Below, one piece after another: positions 7,192-24,829 of a DNA stretch of 64,000 nt (position 1 is its first letter; every line of letters begins with the position of its first letter). The notes below the pieces were generated by a model. The model was not told the DNA's origin. It made no database searches and saw nothing but the letters and a program-made list of their open reading frames with translations. The DNA lies in the IMG/VR virus record IMGVR_UViG_3300047157_000197, positions 211,971-275,970 of that record, one strand, 5' to 3'. Made by a program: the position numbers and the translations under genes.

Positions 7192-8084
7192 TGAAAGTAG
7201 TAATATCAATTTTCTGTTTACCATATGAGATAGATGATTTGGAAAATACACTAAATCAACTAAAGAAGGCATCTTATTATATAGATAAAAAAATAGATTG
7301 GTGTTTAGATGTAACGATGTGTTTGGCAGATGATATGGTAAATTGGAATAAATCATCTTTACCAAAGAAGTTTTTTGAAGATAAATTATTAAAATTATTA
7401 TCAATAACAGATTGGTGTACGAAGAATATTCAAACTTCAACAGAAATAAAAGGATGTGTATCTCAGAGAAGATATTCTTTAGAAAAACATAGAGAAGCAG
7501 ATTACTTTATTTGGTTAGATACAGATATTATATTTGATGAAAGAACGTTGTTCTATATCGAACAAAGTATAAAAGGTACAAATAAAGATTATTTACAAAC
7601 AATCATTACACCAGAAATTGTTAGAGTTTGGGATAATACTTGGGATTGTATTGTAAATGAACAATTCTTAGATAAACCACTTGAATATCAAAAAACAAAT
7701 GACCCTTATAAAGATAGTGGTATCAAAGGAGATATTAGTATTGTACCTGTAAATAATTCAAACTCCCCTCAATCAAGATTTAAATTTGCAGGAGGATGGT
7801 TCACTTGTATAAGTGGAAAACTTCTAAATAGAATTGGAATACCAGATTCATTTGCTCACTATGGTTATGAAGATACCTTTTTAATGGTGGGTAGTGAAAA
7901 ACTCGTTAGAGAACAAAATGAAGAAATTCATCAATTCAAAATAAAAAACCTAGTAGTTTGTGAAAACTACAAATATAGAGGACATTATCATTACCTAAAT
8001 TCTCTCTCAGTTTACGATAGAAGAGAGGAATTTAAAAAAATATCCCATGATAATTTCATATCAGAAGTAAAAATAATACAATAA
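7191..8084 (+). CDS. putative GT-A glycosyltransferase
   Basis: FIWLDTD, GGWF, YGYED. Confidence 0.55.
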   Translation: MKVVISIFCLPYEIDDLENTLNQLKKASYYIDKKIDWCLDVTMCLADDMVNWNKSSLPKKFFEDKLLKLLSITDWCTKNIQTSTEIKGCVSQRRYSLEKHREADYFIWLDTDIIFDERTLFYIEQSIKGTNKDYLQTIITPEIVRVWDNTWDCIVNEQFLDKPLEYQKTNDPYKDSGIKGDISIVPVNNSNSPQSRFKFAGGWFTCISGKLLNRIGIPDSFAHYGYEDTFLMVGSEKLVREQNEEIHQFKIKNLVVCENYKYRGHYHYLNSLSVYDRREEFKKISHDNFISEVKIIQ

Positions 8085-8155
8085 ACCTACCCTTTAGAAT
8101 CTAATACCTATATTTATTGTTGTAAGAAATTACTTACATAAAACAAGTTATACCC

Positions 8156-8212
8156 AACATTCCCCCAAAAAGGGCAGTTCTACTTAACAATCCCCATAGA
8201 GGGCAGTTCTAC
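8156..8212 (+). repeat. tandem 27-28 nt repeat with CCC/GGG hairpin in the operon leader
   Basis: aacattcccccaaaaagggcagttctac / aacaatccccatagagggcagttctac. Confidence 0.8.
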
Positions 8213-14362: not shown

Positions 14363-14893
14363 ATGAGAAAAATAGATTTTAAATTAGTAGTAATAGGTAT
14401 ATTGATAGGAGTATCAGTATGGCAATTTTTAAACCCAACAATACAAGAAGTAGAAAAGATTAAAGAAATCGAAGTACTTCAGACTGTAATTGATAGTATC
14501 TATGTTGAAAAACTGATAGAGAAGAAAGTTTTTGTACCAAAGTATATTACAAAAATAAAAAGAGATACTATAATCAAAGAAGTAATTGTAGAAAAAATTA
14601 AAACTAAAATCAAAAAGGTTTATATAGATAAACCATATGAAGTAATCGTACCGAAGTATGAATTACCAGAATCAAAGTGGTATGCTGGATTTGCATATCA
14701 ATGGGATATGGAAAATTACTTTAGTGGAGCAAATGTACAAGTTTTACATAAATTCAAAAATGATAAAATGTTTAGTATAGATGTTGGATTTAGAAACGAT
14801 TTAATAGATTTAGAAAATAATCTTGGAAAATTAAGACCTTATGTTGGAGGAACAATATATTTCAGATTAGATAAACCAAAAGATAATTTTTAA
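14363..14893 (+). CDS. N-terminally anchored protein with beta-stalk and C-terminal beta strands
   Basis: TM, IEKKVFVP/DTII repeats, alternating-hydrophobic C-terminus. Confidence 0.55.
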   Translation: MRKIDFKLVVIGILIGVSVWQFLNPTIQEVEKIKEIEVLQTVIDSIYVEKLIEKKVFVPKYITKIKRDTIIKEVIVEKIKTKIKKVYIDKPYEVIVPKYELPESKWYAGFAYQWDMENYFSGANVQVLHKFKNDKMFSIDVGFRNDLIDLENNLGKLRPYVGGTIYFRLDKPKDNF

Positions 14894-16986
14894 TGAAGAA
14901 ACTTCTTTTCATATTATTACTGTTACCAACTTTAGTATTTGGTCAGACCGGTGCTGGTTATACTCCAAGTGGTGAAGGAAAAATAAATTATAAATCCTAC
15001 AAAACTCACTCTGGTAATGGTGCAGCATCATCTTATAATAGTGTATCATATAGTGGTGGAGCAGGTTCAACTGCTGAGTTTGATGCAATGGTTGATACAA
15101 ACCAACCAGGTACAACATTAACTCATGTTGGTGAAGCAACACCATGGAGTTCAGGTGGTTTAAATGGAGGACACCCACCGAGATGGGGTAATTCGTATTT
15201 TGCAATAGTTTATTCAGGTTGGTTCAAACCAAATAAAAATGGAACTTATAATTTCAAAACTTATGCAGATGATTCATCAGAAACTAGATATAGAGAAGTA
15301 GGAACTACTACTTGGCAAACAATTACATTTCAATGGGGTTGTTGTTCTAATCGATATGGTACTGCAAATTTAGATAATACTAAATGGTATGAATTTGAAT
15401 TTAGATACCAAGAATATGGTGGAGGGGATTATTACTATTTTGGTTATTCAATACCAGCAAATTCAAGTTCACCAAATTACAATTGGATAAGTTCCAATCA
15501 TCAATTTGGAACTTGGACAAATGTAGACCCAAGTGGTGGAACAACTACTACAACAGAACCCGAAGTTGATTTAGATTTAGAATTCCATTCTCAATTAGCA
15601 CCAGAACAATATAGATTTGGTGTGTATTATGATGCATCAAATGAACAAGATGGTTCAACATATTTCAATACTTCTACAATGAATTCAAAATATTATTTAG
15701 ATGATGATGGAAGTAAAGATATAACTGATTATCTAAATTTGGTTAAGATGACTGATGGTTTGAAAGCAACCACAGAAAGTGGAAGTGTAGAGTGGGTAGT
15801 TTTATATCCATATGATTCTACAAACGATAGACATCGAATACTGATTGATGGTAGAGAATTTACTGCTACTAATCCTGATACAGACCCAAATGATTTAAAA
15901 TCATTACAATTACTTGATTTATATGATGGAACAATTACTGTTCATAGTGTAAGTGAGGGTTCGGGTGGTTGGCAACAATATTACATACCAGGTAATCTAA
16001 CAACTGCTATATCTAATAGTTCATATGGAAGTGGTGTGATTAGAAATGCTGGTAGTTATTTTGGTATTAGAGCAGAGTTCTCATTTGAAGATGTTGAAAT
16101 ATATAAAGGACATAAAATAGTTGTTAATAATCCATCTGATAATATAGAAGGGTGGACAGCTGAAGAATTTATGGATGATTACATTACAGTTGCAGATGTA
16201 GTTGCAGGATTTAATGAATTAGCAGGTGGTGGAATATTCGGTGGATATAAAGGAGATTTGAATGGAGTTCAATTACAAAACTCAGATGTTAATCAAGATG
16301 GTGAGTTTGATTTTCAAGATAGTCAAATAGGATTGGCTTTCTTAAATGGTGATGATACTCCTTTTAATGGTTACCTACAAGAGATAATGAGAATAGTTCC
16401 TAAATCAGAATACGATAATACTACAACTACTAATTGGAAAACACAAACAAATAAATCACCATCAACAAATTTTACCTTTAGTATTATAGATACGATACAA
16501 ACCTTAGAATATAAAGTTTCATTTATAGGTGATGTAAATCTTTCACATTCTGCACCACAATCAACAAGTTCACCTGGTACTCAATCAACATCAGTCAGAA
16601 ATTCATCTTCTCAAAAATCAAGTGAATTAGAAGTGTTGTTAGATATTGGTATGGAAGAAGATAAACTTGTGGTAACATTAGATGTACCACAAAACAATCA
16701 TAACATTGTAGGTTCTGAATTTAGAATAGGATATGATAACACTAGAGTGGAGTTTGATAGAATAGAAACTACTTCTAACTTACAATCATTTTCAGCTGAA
16801 AGAACAAACTACATAAAGTTAGGTTCTATATCTACTGATGGTTCTCAAAATTTAAATGGTGGTGTACAATATAAGATTTACTTTTCACCACAACAAACTT
16901 TTGAATCTATATTAGGATTACTATCAGTTACAAAATCAGAATTAGTAAAACAAAATGGGGGTGGAATAGACCATAAAATAAAATGA
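14893..16986 (+). CDS. secreted PA14 + dockerin-like + cohesin-like protein
   Basis: Signal peptide; PA14 motifs YSGWF, GTYNFKTYADDS, YQEYGGGD; ITVAD, SDVNQDGEFDFQDS, GDVNLSH; SEFRIGYDNTRVEF; C-terminal half paralogous to 8791. Confidence 0.7.
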   Translation: MKKLLFILLLLPTLVFGQTGAGYTPSGEGKINYKSYKTHSGNGAASSYNSVSYSGGAGSTAEFDAMVDTNQPGTTLTHVGEATPWSSGGLNGGHPPRWGNSYFAIVYSGWFKPNKNGTYNFKTYADDSSETRYREVGTTTWQTITFQWGCCSNRYGTANLDNTKWYEFEFRYQEYGGGDYYYFGYSIPANSSSPNYNWISSNHQFGTWTNVDPSGGTTTTTEPEVDLDLEFHSQLAPEQYRFGVYYDASNEQDGSTYFNTSTMNSKYYLDDDGSKDITDYLNLVKMTDGLKATTESGSVEWVVLYPYDSTNDRHRILIDGREFTATNPDTDPNDLKSLQLLDLYDGTITVHSVSEGSGGWQQYYIPGNLTTAISNSSYGSGVIRNAGSYFGIRAEFSFEDVEIYKGHKIVVNNPSDNIEGWTAEEFMDDYITVADVVAGFNELAGGGIFGGYKGDLNGVQLQNSDVNQDGEFDFQDSQIGLAFLNGDDTPFNGYLQEIMRIVPKSEYDNTTTTNWKTQTNKSPSTNFTFSIIDTIQTLEYKVSFIGDVNLSHSAPQSTSSPGTQSTSVRNSSSQKSSELEVLLDIGMEEDKLVVTLDVPQNNHNIVGSEFRIGYDNTRVEFDRIETTSNLQSFSAERTNYIKLGSISTDGSQNLNGGVQYKIYFSPQQTFESILGLLSVTKSELVKQNGGGIDHKIK

Positions 16987-17853: not shown

Positions 17854-18501
17854 ATGTTCATATTCACAGAAGAAAATATAAAAGATATTAAGAATGCCGT
17901 TTACACAACAGATGGTATAAAGGATAAGCATGTGAAAAAGATTGAAGGAATCAAAGATGGTTTGTTCAAAGATTTTAATTACTCTAAATACAAAGTAAAA
18001 AATCCCCCTAAAAATAATTCAATGGTAGTTTATAATGAACTACAATTCTTAAAAGATTTACCAGAAGATGATGCATATGTTGAAGAACATGATGATATTG
18101 AAAAAGTATTTGAGCAAGTTTGTAAAGAAAACAACGTAGAATATCCAAAGGAACTCGTAGAGAGTTTAATCAAATCAGCCGCTGGTATTATATTAGATTT
18201 AAAATATCACTATAATAGACCAAGACCATTTCAACTTTCTAGCCATTATAATATTAAATTAGGTGAAAAAGTATTGGAATCAATGAAAACACCATCATAC
18301 CCATCAGGACATTCAGCACAAGGTATTTTAGTAGGGAAGGTACTACAAACTAAATTACCAATCAATACAGATGCCTTTTTGGAAGCAGGAAAACGAATAT
18401 CATATAGTAGAAATATAGGAAGAGCACACTATCCATCTGATTCAAGAATGGGTGAGATTATTGGTGATGTTATGTTTAACCATATAAAGCACAAGATTTA
18501 A
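17854..18501 (+). CDS. PAP2/vanadium haloperoxidase-superfamily phosphatase
   Basis: KYHYNRPRP, SYPSGH, SRNIGRAHYPSD. Confidence 0.85.
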   Translation: MFIFTEENIKDIKNAVYTTDGIKDKHVKKIEGIKDGLFKDFNYSKYKVKNPPKNNSMVVYNELQFLKDLPEDDAYVEEHDDIEKVFEQVCKENNVEYPKELVESLIKSAAGIILDLKYHYNRPRPFQLSSHYNIKLGEKVLESMKTPSYPSGHSAQGILVGKVLQTKLPINTDAFLEAGKRISYSRNIGRAHYPSDSRMGEIIGDVMFNHIKHKI

Positions 18502-18557: not shown

Positions 18558-19163
18558 ATGAAATTATCAGAATTTAAAGAAGCAGTTAAAAATGTACTTA
18601 GAGAAAGAAGTATAAATGCTATCTCAAAACTACAACAAAGAAATATTGAGAATATTGCATCTGCATTAGAGTTCTACAAAAAGAACAAACATACCGATAA
18701 AAAAGAACCATTTATCAAATTACTTAAAAAACTAGGTAAAGAGAAAGCAGCTCTAGCAAAAGAACTTGATATGAAAGTTAGTGGTATGTACAAAAACGCA
18801 GAGTATAAAGGAGAATCAGTAAACGAAGGAAGTGATATATACATTAACAACAGAATTCAAATTACTAAATTTTCTGGTGGTAAAGACGGTAAACTGATTC
18901 AAATTAACGCACCAAAAATACAAGGTTCTGGTGACCATATTATTATGAAGATAGATGATTTTAAAAAAATGTTAAAAAAATCATCTAACTTATTAAAACA
19001 AGTACAAGAATCAGTAAACGAAGGACCATCTTCTGAAGAAAAAAGAATTGCAATGTTAGCAGTTAAGAAACAAGCTAAATACAGAAATGTAAGTTTATCT
19101 CAAGCAATTCAAGACCAAATAAATGCATTAGAAGAATTAAAAAGACAATATAAAGGAAAGTAG
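18558..19163 (+). CDS. modular hypothetical protein with ESVNE linkers (putative internal virion protein)
   Basis: MKLSEF...VLRE leader; two ESVNEG linkers. Confidence 0.6.
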   Translation: MKLSEFKEAVKNVLRERSINAISKLQQRNIENIASALEFYKKNKHTDKKEPFIKLLKKLGKEKAALAKELDMKVSGMYKNAEYKGESVNEGSDIYINNRIQITKFSGGKDGKLIQINAPKIQGSGDHIIMKIDDFKKMLKKSSNLLKQVQESVNEGPSSEEKRIAMLAVKKQAKYRNVSLSQAIQDQINALEELKRQYKGK

Positions 19164-19495
19164 TGATTAAACTAAAAAACATATTATCTGAAAGTAAAGT
19201 AGAATTAGGTAAAGTTTATTCTAATCCTTATGCAACTGCATTCAAACCACAAAATACGATTAAAGAAGAAGAGATAAAAGAAGATGACCATGAAGTAGGT
19301 ATGGGATTATCATCCTTAAAATCATCTGTTCGTTCCGCTAAAATCATATATACTAATATCAAAAAACGTAACATTGAAGATTTAGATGGTTGGGTTCAAG
19401 AGAAAATGACCTTAGCATCCGATTATCTTAAGAGTGTTGCTGATTACATGGAAGATTTAGACGAATACGATAAAGATGGAACAAATACTAACTAA
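19163..19495 (+). CDS. hypothetical protein with MIKLKNILSE leader
   Basis: GTG start; DHEVGM, LDGWVQEK module. Confidence 0.65.
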   Translation: MIKLKNILSESKVELGKVYSNPYATAFKPQNTIKEEEIKEDDHEVGMGLSSLKSSVRSAKIIYTNIKKRNIEDLDGWVQEKMTLASDYLKSVADYMEDLDEYDKDGTNTN

Positions 19496-19508
19496 TCATA
19501 ATCACATA

Positions 19509-20113
19509 ATGGAATTATTAGGAGCATTTTTAACCGGTGTAGTGGGACCAGTATTATATTTACTAATTAGTAGATATTTACAGAAACAAAAAGAAAAGAC
19601 TAGAGATATCGTAAAAGAAAATATTCAAGTGTTTCCTTAATTTCAAATGAACTTGAAGAAATCAGAGAAGAATTCAAAGGAGATAGAGTTTGGATTGCTC
19701 AGTTTCATAATGGTGGTAACTTCTACCCCACAGGTAAATCAATCCAAAAATTCTCAATATTCTATGAAGTAACCAAAATTGGTATATCTTCGGTATCTCA
19801 TACCTTTAATAATATACCTTGTTCACTTTACCCTAAAACATTTGAACATACAATGGATGGAAATAATATTTATATTCCAGATTTCAAAGACCCTAAAATT
19901 GCAACCTATGGATTAAAAGGAGCAGCAGAATCTGTTGGTACAAAATCTACATACTTAGTACCACTATTTACCTTAGATGATAAGTACATCGGAAACATAG
20001 GAATTGATTATGTTAGTAAGAAAAAGAAAATGACCAAAGATGATTGGGAACATTTCCAAATCAAAGCTGGTAGAATAGCAGGATATATTTCAAACCACTT
20101 ATCTGCTAACTAA
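19509..20113 (+). CDS. TM + GAF-like protein, holin-like candidate (one-base deletion near 19625)
   Basis: MELLGAF TM at 19509; adding one T at atattcaagt gives a continuous frame ...DRVWIAQFHNGG... into the 19853 ORF. Confidence 0.55.
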
Positions 20114-20154
20114 AATACCCTTATTTATACTCATTATAAACTACAAAAATAATC

Positions 20155-20207
20155 CACTTTTTATTAGGTTTTCTCGTTTATTTTCACTATATTTACTATG
20201 TAAATAA
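20155..20207 (+). promoter_or_regulatory. repeated promoter cassette (copy at 35584-35636)
   Basis: cactttttattagg-N7-gtttattttcactatatttactatgtaaataa in both. Confidence 0.8.
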
Positions 20208-20215
20208 TCTAAAGT

Positions 20216-20605
20216 ATGACTGAGAAAGAAGTCCAAAAAATAATCAACGAAGTTTATCCAAAGATAGAGAAACATTATGGTTACTCTAAATTTATATCAG
20301 AGTGTACTCCTTATGTAGAAACTCATTATAATATCTATGCTAGATATAGTGGTGAACCTGAAGCTAGAGGTGAACAAGATGATTGTCATGCTGAATTTGA
20401 TAGAACTGATAATAGTATTGTTATCTATTGGCCTAATATGAAAAATAGAAAACATATAATTCAAACTTTAGTTCACGAATACCAACATTACCTACAATCA
20501 CCATCTTGGTTCAAAAGATATTATGATATGGGATATGATTATGGTAATCATCCTTACGAAGTTCAAGCGTATGGTGAAGAAAAGAATTGGGTTCTTTTTA
20601 AATAA
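20216..20605 (+). CDS. small HExxH metallopeptidase-like protein
   Basis: TLVHEYQH...HPYEVQA. Confidence 0.7.
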   Translation: MTEKEVQKIINEVYPKIEKHYGYSKFISECTPYVETHYNIYARYSGEPEARGEQDDCHAEFDRTDNSIVIYWPNMKNRKHIIQTLVHEYQHYLQSPSWFKRYYDMGYDYGNHPYEVQAYGEEKNWVLFK

Positions 20606-20633
20606 TATATTTATACACAAATAGGAGAACATT

Positions 20634-20960
20634 ATGATAACATTAAAATCAATATTAGAAGATGCTAAAATCAATACAAAGATTGATGAAGCAAACGATA
20701 CATACTTTAAATCTTTTACAGATGCAGTAGAATTCGCTAGAAAAGCTACTGAAAAAAGAGGATTCACAATCGATGAAGATGATTGGCAATCTCAAATTGC
20801 TTTTGGTGGTAAGTATTCTCGTTCAAGGCCTTCTAAAGGTAAAACGAATTCATTTACAGTAGGGTTACTTAAAAAAGGTAAACCACAAAGAAAATCATTA
20901 CAAATCTCTGTATTTGGTATGGATAGTGGTTCTTATGAATTAACCCACTACATTAACTAA
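20634..20960 (+). CDS. hypothetical protein with MITLKSILE leader
   Basis: ORF track; GGAG and TATTTATA upstream. Confidence 0.7.
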   Translation: MITLKSILEDAKINTKIDEANDTYFKSFTDAVEFARKATEKRGFTIDEDDWQSQIAFGGKYSRSRPSKGKTNSFTVGLLKKGKPQRKSLQISVFGMDSGSYELTHYIN

Positions 20961-21506
20961 TGATTAAATTAAAAGATATGATAAGTAGAAGTTTATTTGT
21001 TGAATCAAAGAAACTCAGAGTTTTTGACTTTGATGATACTTTGGTTAAAACAACTTCGTTTATTTATATTACTAATGGTGATAAGAAAAAGAAACTTACA
21101 CCAGGTCAATATGCAGTTTACAATGAGAAGCCTGGTGATGAATTTGATTTCTCAGATTTCCAAAAAGTACAAGACCCAAAAGAAATTAAAAAGATAACTA
21201 AACGTTTTTCGTAGAATCGTAAAAAGTAGTGGTGGTGATGGAGTTCACATCCTAACTGCCAGAGCAGCATACAAACCGATAAGACAATATCTAAAAGATA
21301 TCGGTATTAACATGAGTAAAATATATGTAACCGCATTAGCATCTAACAATCCAAAAGATAAAGCAGATTGGATTGAAGATAAGATTGATAATGAAGGATA
21401 TGATGATGTATATTTTGCTGATGATTCCAAAAAGAACGTTGAAGCAACTAAAAAAATGTTAAGAAAAAAAAATATTAAGTTTAGAGTTCAACTGATAAAA
21501 CATTAA
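20960..21506 (+). CDS. HAD-family phosphatase with MIKLKD leader (one-base insertion near 21201)
   Basis: FDFDDTL, ILTAR, YFADD; removing one A joins the 20960 and 21312 ORFs. Confidence 0.75.
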
Positions 21507-21556
21507 GTTCGGTATGATTATTGAACTATATACTAAATAAATCTATATTTATAAAT

Positions 21557-22495
21557 ATGAGACACCTAATATACATACTGTGGGTGTTGTTACTTACATC
21601 TTGTGGTACAACATACCAACTATCAACAATCAATCACGACCCAATCTATACATCTGATGGAACAGAAATCCAATTTGATGTAGTAGATAACGAATTTCAA
21701 TTAGCAAGAAAGTTCAGAACAGATGATAAATTCCGATGGGATTTTGCACAATTTGCAATGAAACAAGACCTAAGATGGAACTATGATTTCTATTTCAATA
21801 ATAGAATGTACAGAAGTCCATATGCATCACCATTTGATTTCTATTGGAACTCACATAACTATTGGTGGAATTGGGCAACTAATTCACATTTCAATATGGG
21901 ATTCAATCATTGGGATAGATTTGGATTCTATGGATATGGTAGTTCTTTTGGATATTATGGATTCAATAGATATGGTTGGAACAATGGTTACTATGGTAAT
22001 GGTTGGGGATACAGACAGAGAATGAATGATTATGCATGGAGAAATAGAAATAGAACAAATACAGCTTATGTAGTTGGTAGAAGAAGTTCAAACAATGTTG
22101 TAGTTGGTAATAGAACTAACGTAATAAAAGATAGAGTTATTATTAATAGAAACAAACCTAGACTGGTTGTTGATAAGGATGTAGTTATTGATAGAGCAAT
22201 TATCAAACTTAAACGAAATAACAACAACATCAGAGTTTACGAAAACCCTAATAACGTTCCTAATAAAATTATAATAAGAAATAATAACAACAGTAAACCT
22301 GTTAGAAATTATAATAGACCAGAGAACAATAGAAATAACTTTAACAGAAATAATAATACAAGACCAAGTAGAACTTACACACCTCCATCAAGAAGTTCTT
22401 CACCACCTGTGATTAGTAGACCTCCAACAAGAAGTTCTAATCCACCTGTGATTAGTAGAGGTAGTGGTGGTAGTAGAGGTTCTGTAAAGAATTAG
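21557..22495 (+). CDS. lipoprotein with aromatic/Gly/Asn-rich and Arg/Asn/Ser-rich low-complexity regions
   Basis: Lipobox LTS-C; likely start 21557. Confidence 0.7.
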   Translation: MRHLIYILWVLLLTSCGTTYQLSTINHDPIYTSDGTEIQFDVVDNEFQLARKFRTDDKFRWDFAQFAMKQDLRWNYDFYFNNRMYRSPYASPFDFYWNSHNYWWNWATNSHFNMGFNHWDRFGFYGYGSSFGYYGFNRYGWNNGYYGNGWGYRQRMNDYAWRNRNRTNTAYVVGRRSSNNVVVGNRTNVIKDRVIINRNKPRLVVDKDVVIDRAIIKLKRNNNNIRVYENPNNVPNKIIIRNNNNSKPVRNYNRPENNRNNFNRNNNTRPSRTYTPPSRSSSPPVISRPPTRSSNPPVISRGSGGSRGSVKN

Positions 22496-22540
22496 TTAAT
22501 ATTAATTTCTTTATATTTATATAGGTAAAGGAAATACCAT

Positions 22541-24007
22541 ATGTCAAGATTAAAAAAAGAAATCCTAAATAAACTTAAAGAGTATGCCGGTAAGATGGGT
22601 AAAGACCATCTAGGTGGTGATGATATTGAATCCCCAAAAAAAGGTGGGTTAAGAGATTTTGATGGATACGATAACGTAGACTACAATCAAGATATGCCAA
22701 TGGATGAAATGCAGGTTGTAAACAAAGCAACAGGTAAAGATATTACCAAGCACGTTTTAGCTTTATTATCGGGTAAAATTGATAAGAAAAAGTTTGAAAA
22801 ACTTACTGGTCTAAAAAAAGAATCAGTAAACGAAGTTGGAGTAAATGTTTGGTATTTTTACAAAAAAGCTAACAAAAATAAGAATAAGTTTTTTAAGATG
22901 TTATCTGATTTTCGTAAAAAACATAGTGATACTGCATGGATAAAGATGTTAAATTATGCTCTTGAGGATTTTAATGAAAATCCAAAGAAGTATAAAACAA
23001 TTGATGATAAACAAAATATATTATTTAAAAACCTTCAAAACAATAAAAAAGTATATGAGGGTATGATGTCTACAATAGACCAAATCAGACAAGATTCAAA
23101 AGATGTTAGAGATTTCGTAAAGAACGTATTTAAGGATAGAGAATTTAAAAAGATGAGTAATGATAAAGATTTCATTAAGTATCTTAAATCTATCTATGAA
23201 GGTACTACAAATGAAGATGGTCATCCACAAAATTGGATGAGTGGTAGAACTTCTGATTACCATACTGCACTAAGAGGTAAGAATAAAGATTATAGTGGTG
23301 GTACTAACTTTAAAAAAAAGAATCATGGTCAACCAGATGTTGAAGAAGATGATGAGGACCAAGAAACTAACCATCTGAGTAATAAACAAACTCATATAAA
23401 ATCTCCATTAAAAATGGCAGAGAGTGGAAAAAAAAAATCCGATAAGAACTACAAAGATTGGAAAAGTAGTAGATTAAGAAAAGAAATATCTAAAAAACTT
23501 AAAGAATACGGTCAAAGATTAGATTTATCATTTATAGAAGATGAAGAAGCTAAGTTAGATGGAACATATCCATCAACTGATGCAATTGATAGAGATATTG
23601 ATGAAACTGCTAAAAGAGATTACAAAGATGAGTACAAGAAATTTCAATCATCAAAGAAATCAAAGAAATACAGAGCGGAATTAAATAAGTACAATAGACA
23701 AAAGGGTACTTATGGTAATGGTGATGGTAAAGATGCTTCACATAAAGGTGGGAAGATAGTAGGTTTTGAATCTGCATCTAAAAATCGTGGCAGAAAAGAA
23801 AAGAGTAGGTTAAAGAAAGAATCAATTACACTAGATGAAATCGGTATATTTCCTGTAAACAATTACCTTAAAGGTATGATTCCACGAAACATGATGGATA
23901 CTACAACAAGACAGAAAAAAGAAAGATTAAAATCAACTATAAATGATTTGAAAAGTACGTTAAATCATTTTTGGAAATCACATGATATACCATATAGGAT
24001 AAAATAA
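22541..24007 (+). CDS. modular protein with Glu-bounded segments, including an HNH-like module
   Basis: ESVNE, VYEG, IYEG junctions; KRDYKDEY...GDGKDASH...SKNR segment. Confidence 0.6.
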   Translation: MSRLKKEILNKLKEYAGKMGKDHLGGDDIESPKKGGLRDFDGYDNVDYNQDMPMDEMQVVNKATGKDITKHVLALLSGKIDKKKFEKLTGLKKESVNEVGVNVWYFYKKANKNKNKFFKMLSDFRKKHSDTAWIKMLNYALEDFNENPKKYKTIDDKQNILFKNLQNNKKVYEGMMSTIDQIRQDSKDVRDFVKNVFKDREFKKMSNDKDFIKYLKSIYEGTTNEDGHPQNWMSGRTSDYHTALRGKNKDYSGGTNFKKKNHGQPDVEEDDEDQETNHLSNKQTHIKSPLKMAESGKKKSDKNYKDWKSSRLRKEISKKLKEYGQRLDLSFIEDEEAKLDGTYPSTDAIDRDIDETAKRDYKDEYKKFQSSKKSKKYRAELNKYNRQKGTYGNGDGKDASHKGGKIVGFESASKNRGRKEKSRLKKESITLDEIGIFPVNNYLKGMIPRNMMDTTTRQKKERLKSTINDLKSTLNHFWKSHDIPYRIK

Positions 24008-24009
24008 TA

Positions 24010-24330
24010 ATGATAAAACTTACATCTATACTTAACGAAGGAAAGATATTATTACAATCTAAAGATAAGAATGCTGAATTACCATCAGTATTTCCTGATT
24101 TTTTAGTACACGCTAAAGAACATAATGTAATACAATTTATTCCAAGAAAATCAGTTGATTTAGATAAAATAGACCAATTGGGTAATATATCAAAAGATGA
24201 TATCACTAAACAATTAGCTAGTTGGGCTGAAAAGAAAACAAAAATCAAATATAAACCATTTAACGATTTCCAAGGAGCAGGATATGGAATTCGTATAGAT
24301 ATGGATTACATTGGAAAAAAACTTAAATAA
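24010..24330 (+). CDS. hypothetical protein with MIKLTSILNE leader
   Basis: ORF track. Confidence 0.65.
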   Translation: MIKLTSILNEGKILLQSKDKNAELPSVFPDFLVHAKEHNVIQFIPRKSVDLDKIDQLGNISKDDITKQLASWAEKKTKIKYKPFNDFQGAGYGIRIDMDYIGKKLK

Positions 24331-24340
24331 GGAGAATCAA

Positions 24341-24829
24341 ATGGCAATAGTACCAAAAGGAATCGTAGTACATAGTATGGGTGAGTATCTTCAATGGGAA
24401 GGTGAATGGATAACAGCTCATGAATTTTTAAAAGAATTGAAACTCTCAGTTCATGGATTTATACATCCTGATGGTAAATATGAAAAGATGATTTCATCAC
24501 CTGGTAAAGCATCTCATGCTGGTAAATCAGAATGGAATGGATTACAACATTTAAACTCACATTATTTAGGATTTGAATTGTTAGTACCTGGTAAACAAAC
24601 GTATGGTTCGTTTTTAAAGGCAATAGAACAAGAAGGTACTTATACTGAAGAACAATTTAAATCATCAGTAGATACAGTAAAATGGTGGATGAAAGAATAT
24701 AATATCCCTGCAGAAAATGTAGTAAGACATTCTGATTGTAGTGGAGACCATGTAAGAGGAAGTGGAAAAGGAAAAGTAGACCCTGGCTCTGCATTTGATT
24801 GGGAACGATTTAAGAAAGAAATTTCATAA
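24341..24829 (+). CDS. N-acetylmuramoyl-L-alanine amidase (Amidase_2), candidate endolysin
   Basis: VVHS, SHAG, GFE, RHSD, KVDPG; start 24341 after AAGGAG. Confidence 0.85.
   Translation: MAIVPKGIVVHSMGEYLQWEGEWITAHEFLKELKLSVHGFIHPDGKYEKMISSPGKASHAGKSEWNGLQHLNSHYLGFELLVPGKQTYGSFLKAIEQEGTYTEEQFKSSVDTVKWWMKEYNIPAENVVRHSDCSGDHVRGSGKGKVDPGSAFDWERFKKEIS

Follow-up and report, generated by a model that had tools for sequence, protein, structure and literature searches.

An in-frame ESVNE linker joins exchangeable polyprotein modules in a marine jumbo T4-like phage and fits the cutting site of the phage's head protease

In a marine jumbo T4-like phage, small protein modules are strung together by a five-residue linker, ESVNE, whose DNA is kept letter-identical, and related phages gain, lose and swap modules at this linker. 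We read it as an in-frame cassette joint that is probably also a cleavage site: whereas module exchange is shown by comparison of relatives, cleavage and the fate of the modules are inferred, in the absence of proteomic or biochemical data showing a cut. The window analysed here comprises 64,000 nt, positions 211971-275970 of a 275,970-bp genome, and positions below are those of the window unless stated otherwise. A sequence-only reading had noted three identical copies of a 17-mer between unrelated segments and proposed that the element acts both as a protease site and as recombination microhomology, building polyproteins from swappable mini-domains. Our analysis supports this interpretation, although the protease-site half fits the evidence without being shown. 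That reading included only 3 of the 8 ESVNE copies and none of the head-gene context.

Identity of the linker within the genome

The 17-mer AGAATCAGTAAACGAAG is exact at 18812, 19007 and 22819 on the + strand. Shuffles gave 0.29 matches at up to 3 mismatches, and none of 100 shuffles reached the observed 4. All three copies encode ESVNE in frame, at residues 86-90 and 151-155 of the ORF at 18558-19163 and at residues 94-98 of the ORF at 22541-24007. The flanking DNA and peptides are unrelated, and a repeat search extended the identity to at most 22 nt at 82-91%. In the whole genome there are 5 exact copies and 11 at up to 2 mismatches, all on the + strand. ESVNE occurs 8 times, always in frame, against 0.11 expected from amino-acid composition, and is confined to four ORFs, hereafter genes A-D. 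Notably, seven of the eight copies share the same 15 nt. Given the codon usage of the genome, the probability of that codon string is 0.041, and that of 7 or more in 8 is 1.5e-9; using only the four genes' own codons outside the motif, these values are 0.045 and 2.8e-9. Thus, codon usage does not explain the identity. AAC is the minor Asn codon (28%). Furthermore, the 12-nt core occurs 8 times, always in frame as SVNE, and never on the other strand or in another frame. The segments between and beside the linkers are 46-93 aa here, and 40-309 aa in relatives with a median of 76, not only 40-65 aa as the sequence-only reading had stated.

The DNA-level homogeneity extends beyond this genome. In the contigs fetched as relatives of C and D, ESVNE is spelled GAA TCA GTA AAC GAA 42 times and GAA TCC GTA AAT GAA 58 times, although TCC is only 7% of Ser codons in the second lineage. 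In 237 loci fetched by the 16-mer alone, 113 carry only the first spelling, 113 only the second and 1 both, and 319 of 329 matches are in the longest open frame. Hundreds of marine viral contigs thus carry the linker in one of two codon dialects that almost never co-occur. By contrast, the same peptide inside the conserved protease of the second lineage uses other, variable codons. Moreover, two relatives, L043 and L069, have near-identical flanks, yet the Ser codon of the linker is AGT in one and TCC in the other. It should be noted, however, that at orthologous sites the synonymous positions of the linker drift about as much as those of the adjacent conserved module; the unusual feature is identity between non-orthologous copies, which shared descent of the linker DNA could partly explain without any selection for recombination.

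Gain, loss and exchange of modules at the linker

Gene C (18558-19163, +) encodes a 201-aa three-module polyprotein, in which C1 (residues 1-85) is joined to C2 (91-150) by the linker copy at 18812-18828 (+; ESVNE at 18813-18827), and C2 to C3 (156-201) by the copy at 19007-19023 (+; ESVNE at 19008-19022). No Pfam or PHROG family was found for C. Homology to C breaks at residues 86-88 or at 135-153. Of 120 homologs, representing 26 architectures, 83 keep both C1 and C3; of these, 64 have a bare linker between them and 19 carry one or two of 13 cassette kinds. Eleven of the 13 kinds carry a canonical linker on both sides, whereas the other two open with a degenerate ENVV/ENTI joint. A 136-aa allele of C at 99% identity, found on 30 or more contigs, lacks exactly the middle module. 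A metatranscriptome contig skips 18812-19006, the joint 18811->19007 having 18 nt that fit both sides; linker copies 1 and 2 are the left and right edges of this natural 195-nt deletion. A further variant contig diverges at 19027 into a module that sits in gene p250 of this genome.

Gene D (22541-24007, +) encodes a 488-aa polyprotein with one canonical linker and several degenerate joints; only residues 357-423 match a family (phrog_6437, function unknown). The canonical copy at 22819-22835 (+; ESVNE at 22820-22834) joins D1 to D2, and variant contigs break at 22820 and 22835. The allele in a near-identical strain is 592 aa, with one module replaced. In comparison with the allele of the relative L121, D shows a module replacement with sharp DNA edges at the linkers: the left edge is the canonical copy, and the right edge is the degenerate joint VYE followed by Gly at 23051-23062 (+; residues 171-174), which aligns with ESVNE followed by Gly in L121. 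Near this joint, at 23049, a variant contig diverges into a YESVIEE linker. A second degenerate joint, IYE followed by Gly at 23192-23203 (+; residues 218-221), is where homology of another relative, L011, to D ends. At 23804-23821 (+), the phrog_6437-like module ends in SRLKKE; a natural variant deletes the last module of D from here (joint 23819->24009), and in the other lineage the same peptide runs straight into ESVNE or ESINE. L011 joins modules of A, B, D and p250 with crossovers inside the linker, and in it the D2 module follows a module of gene B; a close relative joins modules that lie 120 kb apart in this genome.

To compare the linker with other shared sequence, we applied an anchored-flank test, which gave 87 one-sided against 25 collinear pairs at the motif, compared with 3015 against 16750 at other shared 5-mers. 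Module gains, losses and swaps thus break at the motif, although not every indel in this region lies at a linker and most of the variant evidence comes from metagenome contigs rather than isolates. A role of the linker as microhomology is strongly indicated, since crossovers lie inside the 17-19 identical bases. Nevertheless, 15-19 nt is short for efficient RecA/UvsX-type exchange, so the recombination mechanism remains open.

Linker modules also occur as separate genes behind short leaders. The gene following C begins with a ten-codon leader, (V/M)IKLKNILSE (19163-19192, +), which resembles a capsid-targeting sequence and ends in L-S-E; in relatives L111-L117 the same kind of leader is joined directly to the C3 module. 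The 108-aa gene at 20634-20960 has the leader MITLKSILE (20634-20660, +), and its body is the last module of a 717-aa polyprotein in the relative L077, where it follows SVNE and Ala; the whole gene is deleted in one metagenome (joint 20630->20952). The 106-aa gene at 24010-24330 has the leader MIKLTSILNE followed by Gly (24010-24039, +), and its homolog is the first module of the L077 polyprotein. Thus, leader-bearing single genes and linker-joined modules are interchangeable between genomes. Such leaders are also present in p604 and p250, but are absent from C and D themselves, which start with ordinary modules.

The prohead protease and possible cleavage at the linker

The genome encodes a T4 gp21-type (MEROPS S77) prohead protease at genome positions 111608-112201 (PF03420, E 9.5e-27, 91 bits against a cut-off of 27), in which H73, S126/127 and D153 are invariant in the alignment with T4 gp21. 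It sits between linker genes A and B, in the order TerL, portal, p290, A, p93, protease, p62, p604, p250, B, three small ORFs, an acidic scaffold-like protein and MCP. Genes C and D, by contrast, lie 120 kb from the head genes, in a second cluster with small leader-bearing genes, a PAP2 phosphatase and an amidase. T4 gp21 cuts after Glu at L/I-X-E (PMC9026906), known examples being ITE-6 and LTE-619 (PMC5694885). Over 162 distinct linker contexts, P1 is always Glu, P3 is V (123), I (31) or L (8), and P1' is G in 29% and A in 27%, which fits the family's rule of a hydrophobic residue, any residue, then Glu. However, Val is the commonest P3 residue here, whereas T4 uses Leu or Ile, and the strict E-S at P5-P4 and Asn at P2 are not needed by the T4 rule. 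The predicted maturation site of the MCP, LLDE followed by ATATG, aligns with FLTE followed by AEIGG in T4 gp23, which is likely the T4 maturation site.

Taken together, these data favor, with fair though not full confidence, the following explanation. Four genes of this phage, which has T4-type head genes, encode strings of small, unrelated modules of about 40-110 aa. The polyproteins may enter the prohead core through their end modules, or through short MIKLKxILxE leaders, as T4 core and internal proteins do. Judging from family specificity, the S77 protease would then cut after the last Glu of each linker, freeing the modules inside the capsid. The linker DNA, 15-19 identical bases always in frame, is where cassettes are deleted, inserted and exchanged within and between co-occurring genomes, the products staying in frame with a linker at each joint. 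We hypothesize that repeated exchange at the linkers keeps them identical inside one recombining phage population, which would explain why two large lineages each have their own synonymous spelling of the same peptide. Capsid-packaged, injected mini-proteins like the T4 internal proteins are the most likely role of the modules, but this is speculation.

Alternatively, although we consider it unlikely, the linker might be an uncleaved inter-domain spacer or docking motif of intact multi-domain proteins, its DNA identity reflecting only common descent because each cassette travels with a copy of the same ancestral linker. The conservation of E-S and Asn beyond what a gp21-type rule needs, the drift of orthologous linkers like their neighbours and the lack of cleavage data are in line with this view, as is a low-confidence model in which the second linker lies at the end of a helix rather than in a loop. 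On the other hand, the motif context matches the protease encoded between A and B, and modules also occur behind leaders ending in L-x-E, as expected if both forms end up as free modules. Moreover, the degenerate VYE and IYE joints keep only the protease-relevant positions, and descent alone does not explain a Ser codon-family switch within otherwise identical DNA. Even less likely, the 15-17 nt could be primarily a nucleic-acid signal, such as the target of a site-specific nuclease or recombinase, or an RNA processing or translation-pausing signal, with the peptide as a by-product and cassette movement driven by an enzyme, as at integron attC sites. Indeed, synonymous positions are fixed within each lineage and the two spellings almost never co-occur, as would happen if a lineage-specific factor read the DNA, and T4-type phages carry many homing endonucleases (segD lies next to gene 23 in T4). 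However, in this genome the sequence never occurs out of frame, on the other strand or between genes, amino-acid-preserving variants such as ESINE, ESLNE and ETLNE sit at equivalent joints, no integrase or nuclease was found beside the clusters, and the two spellings differ at two of fifteen positions, so no single conserved site exists. Finally, although the genome is AT-rich with skewed codon usage and most relatives are metagenome assemblies, chance, codon bias or chimeric assembly is contradicted by the probabilities given above, by the recurrence of the same alleles in many independent samples (for example P0003, an allele on 30 or more contigs) and by a shared stretch of 15-22 nt, which is probably below the assembler word sizes (31 for Logan, 21 or more for the usual metagenome assemblers) and should therefore not collapse in an assembly graph.

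Relation to known systems and implications

The T4 prohead core and internal proteins (gp22, gp67, gp68, IPI-III, Alt) are processed by gp21, which belongs to the same protease family and is encoded among the same head genes; cargo varying widely behind a conserved targeting and cleavage element is likewise shared, as is cleavage, here predicted, after Glu with a hydrophobic residue at P3, and ten-residue leaders ending in L-x-E, such as the capsid targeting sequence (CTS), are present in neighbouring genes but not in C and D themselves (PMC9026906, PMC3012670, PMC5694885). However, T4's motif is only L/I-X-E and its internal proteins are separate genes, whereas here many cargos are strung into one reading frame by a repeated linker that is identical at the DNA level between unrelated joints, and cassettes move at sub-gene level. 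In the giant phages phiKZ, 201phi2-1 and SPN3US, many head proteins are cut after Glu at a three-residue motif by a gp21-related protease, some at several sites, and paralogs share identical propeptides (PMC5694885). Their motifs, however, are S/A/G-X-E or A-X-E, the protease family is S80 and the proteins are large paralogs; no DNA-identical linker or cassette exchange at the sites is described in the papers read. Polyvalent proteins of phages and conjugative elements (Iyer et al. 2017, PMC5512222) similarly combine several unrelated modules (two to fifteen domains, compared with 3-8 modules per protein here) in highly mosaic architectures; they are encoded near virion genes, as are A and B here, and are thought to be delivered with the DNA and cut into working units. 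They carry recognisable enzymatic domains and usually an embedded peptidase, whereas the modules described here are tiny and uncharacterised, no Pfam or PHROG peptidase or conflict domain was found in A, B, C or D, cutting would be done in trans by the prohead protease, and the joints are one repeated sequence. The PeSL mobile regulatory cassettes of T4-type phages, and Botstein's module-linker idea (PMC2839356), also involve short conserved sequences that bound insertions, deletions and replacements between close relatives, the phage recombination machinery presumably acting on small homologies. However, PeSLs are intergenic elements of about 100 bp, with a promoter and a stem-loop, that shuffle whole genes, whereas the present element is 15-19 bp, coding and in frame, and shuffles parts of genes while also serving as a likely processing site.

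A more far-reaching possibility, which we put forward only tentatively, is a sub-genic cassette-exchange system, in which the 15-nt linker is kept letter-identical because it is the crossover site and doubles as the prohead-protease site, so that any cassette dropped between two linkers is expressed, loaded into the capsid and released. In that case, populations of marine T4-like phages would share a pool of dozens or more mini-protein cassettes, plausibly injected counter-defence or take-over factors, and the two codon spellings would mark two pools that do not exchange with each other.

If our reading holds, splitting at ES[VIL]NE would give a simple handle for mining capsid-delivered mini-proteins from marine viromes. 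None of the modules tested matched a characterised family. The lineage-specific spelling could serve as a marker of which phage populations recombine with each other, and a natural cleavable, recombination-ready linker may also be useful for loading foreign proteins into phage heads, as the T4 CTS already is. If our reading is right, these phages solve three problems with one short sequence, namely, how to add new cargo to the capsid, how to release it and how to trade it with relatives without breaking a reading frame. That would be an intragenic, in-frame version of the module linkers proposed in Botstein's theory of phage modular evolution.

Recurrence and genomic context of the linker

The observation of the sequence-only reading, which had reported a 17-mer identical at window positions 18812, 19007 and 22819 and always in the same frame, is confirmed. 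All three copies are exact and lie on the + strand, whereas shuffled sequences give only 0.29 matches even at three mismatches. Each copy encodes the linker E-S-V-N-E in the frame of gene C (window 18558-19163, 201 aa) or gene D (window 22541-24007, 488 aa). Identity ends within 17-22 nt and the flanks, including the neighbouring peptides, are unrelated, so that a remnant of a larger duplication is rejected. In the 275,970-bp IMG/VR virus record (30.5% G+C), there are five exact copies and eleven at up to 2 mismatches, all on the coding strand. ESVNE occurs eight times against 0.11 expected and is found in four ORFs only, namely, gene A (genome 109617-111164, 515 aa), gene B (genome 114952-115983, 343 aa), C and D. 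Seven of the eight copies are spelled GAA TCA GTA AAC GAA, a spelling that has a probability of 0.041-0.045 under the codon usage of the genome or of the four genes themselves, so seven of eight has P of about 1e-9. Codon bias is thus excluded as the cause. Moreover, the 12-nt core never occurs out of frame or on the other strand.

A and B lie in a T4-type head module with the order large terminase, gp20-type portal, a 290-aa ORF, A, a 93-aa ORF, a Peptidase_S77 (gp21-type) prohead protease, a 62-aa ORF, a 604-aa and a 250-aa ORF, B, three small ORFs, an acidic scaffold-like protein and a gp23-type capsid protein. The protease (genome 111608-112201; positions 7608-8201 of the fetched locus L010) aligns with T4 gp21, and the columns of the catalytic His, Ser and Asp are invariant. 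T4 gp21 cuts after Glu at L/I-X-E (PMC9026906; examples in PMC5694885). The LLDE/ATATG of our capsid protein aligns with FLTE/AEIGG of T4 gp23, which is probably the T4 maturation site, and gene A carries a near copy, ELDE/ATATG. The linker, V-N-E followed by G or A, has the same form. Indeed, over 162 distinct linker contexts in this phage and its relatives, P1 is always Glu, P3 is V, I or L, and P1' is Gly or Ala in 56%. Notably, the protease itself has LLIE/T and RVNE/D near its N-terminus and MNESVNK near its C-terminus, which are candidate self-processing sites of the same form as the linker.

Around C and D, which themselves lack such a leader, and in the head module, seven genes start with a leader of the MIKLKxILxE type. 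Five of these leaders end in L-x-E or M-x-E within about ten residues and have the architecture of the T4 capsid targeting sequence (PMC9026906, PMC3012670), whereas the gene at window 20960 has no Glu before residue 15 and the one at window 29771 is only 16 codons long. The former also has a DxDxT-like motif (FDFDDTL), possibly that of a HAD-type phosphatase, and is split into two ORFs (window 20960-21214 and 21312-21506), although relatives have one 181-aa product; sequencing runs show 1-nt differences at 21199 and 21203, and some contigs skip about 301 nt (21036-21341). Window 19476-20113 contains four short ORFs (54, 41, 45 and 86 aa) where the near-identical strains L121-L124 have one 201-aa gene, and all four runs compared show one extra base after 19625 or 19626. 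This record therefore carries a frameshift, either an assembly error or a pseudogene. The cluster around C and D also holds a PAP2-family phosphatase (window 17854-18501), a 129-aa protein with an HExxH motif (HEYQH; window 20216-20605) and an Amidase_2 cell-wall amidase (window 24311-24829), which might be further packaged or lysis functions. A 324-aa Asn/Tyr/Trp-rich protein (window 21521-22495) has a lipoprotein-like signal (LLLTSCG) and a tandem 39-nt repeat at 22381-22458, and metagenome contigs show many length variants inside it, of 53, 81, 87 and 342 nt, plus one 81-nt replacement. Just upstream of the cluster, a 697-aa secreted protein (window 14893-16986) with a signal peptide and a weak GLEYA/PA14-like match may be an adhesin or fibre component.

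Searches of named phage genomes with C and D by megablast and tblastn found nothing, except that the phrog_6437-like part of D hits small genes of cyanopodoviruses and Flavobacterium phages. Pelagibacter phage HTVC008M and Microcystis phage Mel-JY01 have the same head genes but no ESVNE polyproteins. However, Mel-JY01, the closest named phage, has a 178-aa protein upstream of its protease that matches only the first and last modules of A. A therefore looks like a core protein into which cassettes have been inserted.

Module gains, losses and replacements at the linker

Module gains and losses in relatives do break at the motif. tblastn matches to C in IMG/VR cover residues 1-86/88, or 86-199, or 135/153-199, or 1-199 without the middle module. 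The 46-aa C3 module, the last of gene C, follows x-[VIL]-N-E/G in every relative and is attached to at least four different N-terminal partners, including a bare leader. Among the best 120 of 526 homologs of C, 83 keep both end modules; of these, 64 have a bare single or double linker between them, and the other 19 carry one or two cassettes of 13 kinds. Eleven kinds have a canonical linker on both sides, whereas the two kinds built on the NHDGKSAPYGSGY segment open instead with a degenerate ENVV or ENTI joint. Two of the cassettes are modules that sit in gene A of this genome. Many of the ‘empty’ C1-C3 junctions (in the homolog labelled P0047 and others; L091, L093) carry a double linker, ESVEESINE in 23 of 64 and ESIEESINE in 5, which could be a scar of cassette excision or a minimal cassette.

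A 136-aa allele of C at 99% identity, seen on 30 or more contigs, is C minus exactly its middle module, C2. In syntenic near-identical strains the DNA is collinear up to 18830 and again from 19006, so the crossover lies inside the repeat. Furthermore, contigs of public seawater runs compared with the window show a joint 18811->19007 that skips 195 nt, with 18 nt fitting both sides, and variant contigs diverge at 18813, 19027, 22820, 22835 and 23049. The D allele of strain L121 is 592 aa; its 98 N-terminal residues, which differ from ours at only about a dozen positions, end in the linker, after which our 72-aa module is replaced by about 176 aa, and near-identity resumes at our VYE/G, which aligns with their ESVNE/G. 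L011, a relative at 95% identity, has a 690-aa protein made of modules of A, one new module, the B2 module of gene B, the D2 module of gene D and the tail of p250, the 250-aa ORF product. At the B2-D2 joint the DNA upstream matches our B, the DNA downstream matches our D, and only the linker is shared. D itself looks like a fusion of formerly separate genes: a 38-nt direct repeat (82% identity; window 22547-22584 and 23471-23508) encodes SRLKKEILNKLKEY at its start and SRLRKEISKKLKEY at residue 310, and a third SRLKKE lies at residue 422. In the other lineage SRLKKE runs straight into the linker.

A crude test of BLAST HSP end points gave only weak enrichment, with 9.8% of end points within 5 aa of a motif against 5.5% for random positions (maximum 7.0%), but it is noisy because of low-complexity hits and degenerate joints that were not counted. 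We therefore replaced it with an anchored-flank test, in which pairs of motif occurrences with at least one similar flank are one-sided 87 times and collinear 25 times, while other shared pentapeptides give 3015 one-sided against 16750 collinear pairs, an odds ratio of about 19. Assembly chimeras are an unlikely explanation, since the shared stretch is probably shorter than the word sizes of the assemblers and the alleles recur across samples.

DNA-level homogeneity of the linker

The motif is pervasive in the fetched marine contigs, always on the coding strand. Two spellings dominate, TCA-GTA-AAC in the lineage of this phage and TCC-GTA-AAT in another, although TCC is only 7% of Ser codons in that second lineage. 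In 237 loci that were not chosen by protein homology, 319 of 329 matches are in the longest open frame and no locus has hits on both strands; 113 loci carry only the first spelling, 113 only the second and one both. As an internal control, the ESVNE that is part of the conserved protease in the second lineage, where it follows the catalytic SSRGMGS segment, uses other, variable codons. In addition, two of the relatives, L043 and L069, share near-identical flanks but have AGT in one and TCC in the other for the Ser of the linker, a three-base patch. Synonymous diversity of the linker compared with the adjacent conserved C3 module was not discriminating, because C3 copies are orthologous and also well conserved, and at orthologous sites the linker drifts like its neighbours. 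The anomaly is therefore the identity between non-orthologous copies. Such a pattern is what repeated exchange at the linkers, or descent of all linkers from one DNA segment with homogenisation, would produce.

Inferred mechanism and comparison with known systems

The presence, absence and replacement of cassettes with edges at the linker are observed, as are the gp21-type protease next to A and B and the two mutually exclusive spellings, which co-occur in only one of the 237 loci. By contrast, cleavage after the last Glu, capsid loading through end modules or leaders, and microhomology-based recombination as the cause of the exchange are inferences. Prediction of a protease-linker complex gave no answer and counts neither for nor against cleavage, and the single-sequence AlphaFold2 model of C (mean pLDDT 52) is usable for secondary structure at most. 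Pfam, PHROGs and the ESM Atlas gave no function for the modules. There are weak structural leads, SH3-like for a module of A and HNH-like for D residues 345-428 (window 23573-23824), but they were not supported by Pfam. The latter module (phrog_6437) is very widespread, at 80-94% identity in about 200 IMG/VR loci, and occurs as a small separate gene in cyanopodoviruses and Flavobacterium phages; the Atlas structure search gives TM 0.58-0.65 to small HNH-family proteins, and the module co-occurs with DUF3008 and DUF5872.

We found no phage paper that contains ESVNE and no description of this linker. The system resembles PeSL-mediated shuffling (PMC2839356), but the element is a 15-19-nt coding linker rather than an intergenic promoter cassette. 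It also resembles polyvalent proteins (PMC5512222), but lacks an embedded peptidase and known domains. With cleavage and capsid loading inferred as above, the system works like the targeting and cleavage of internal proteins in T4, and like the multiply processed head proteins of phiKZ-type phages, although here the cargos are concatenated.
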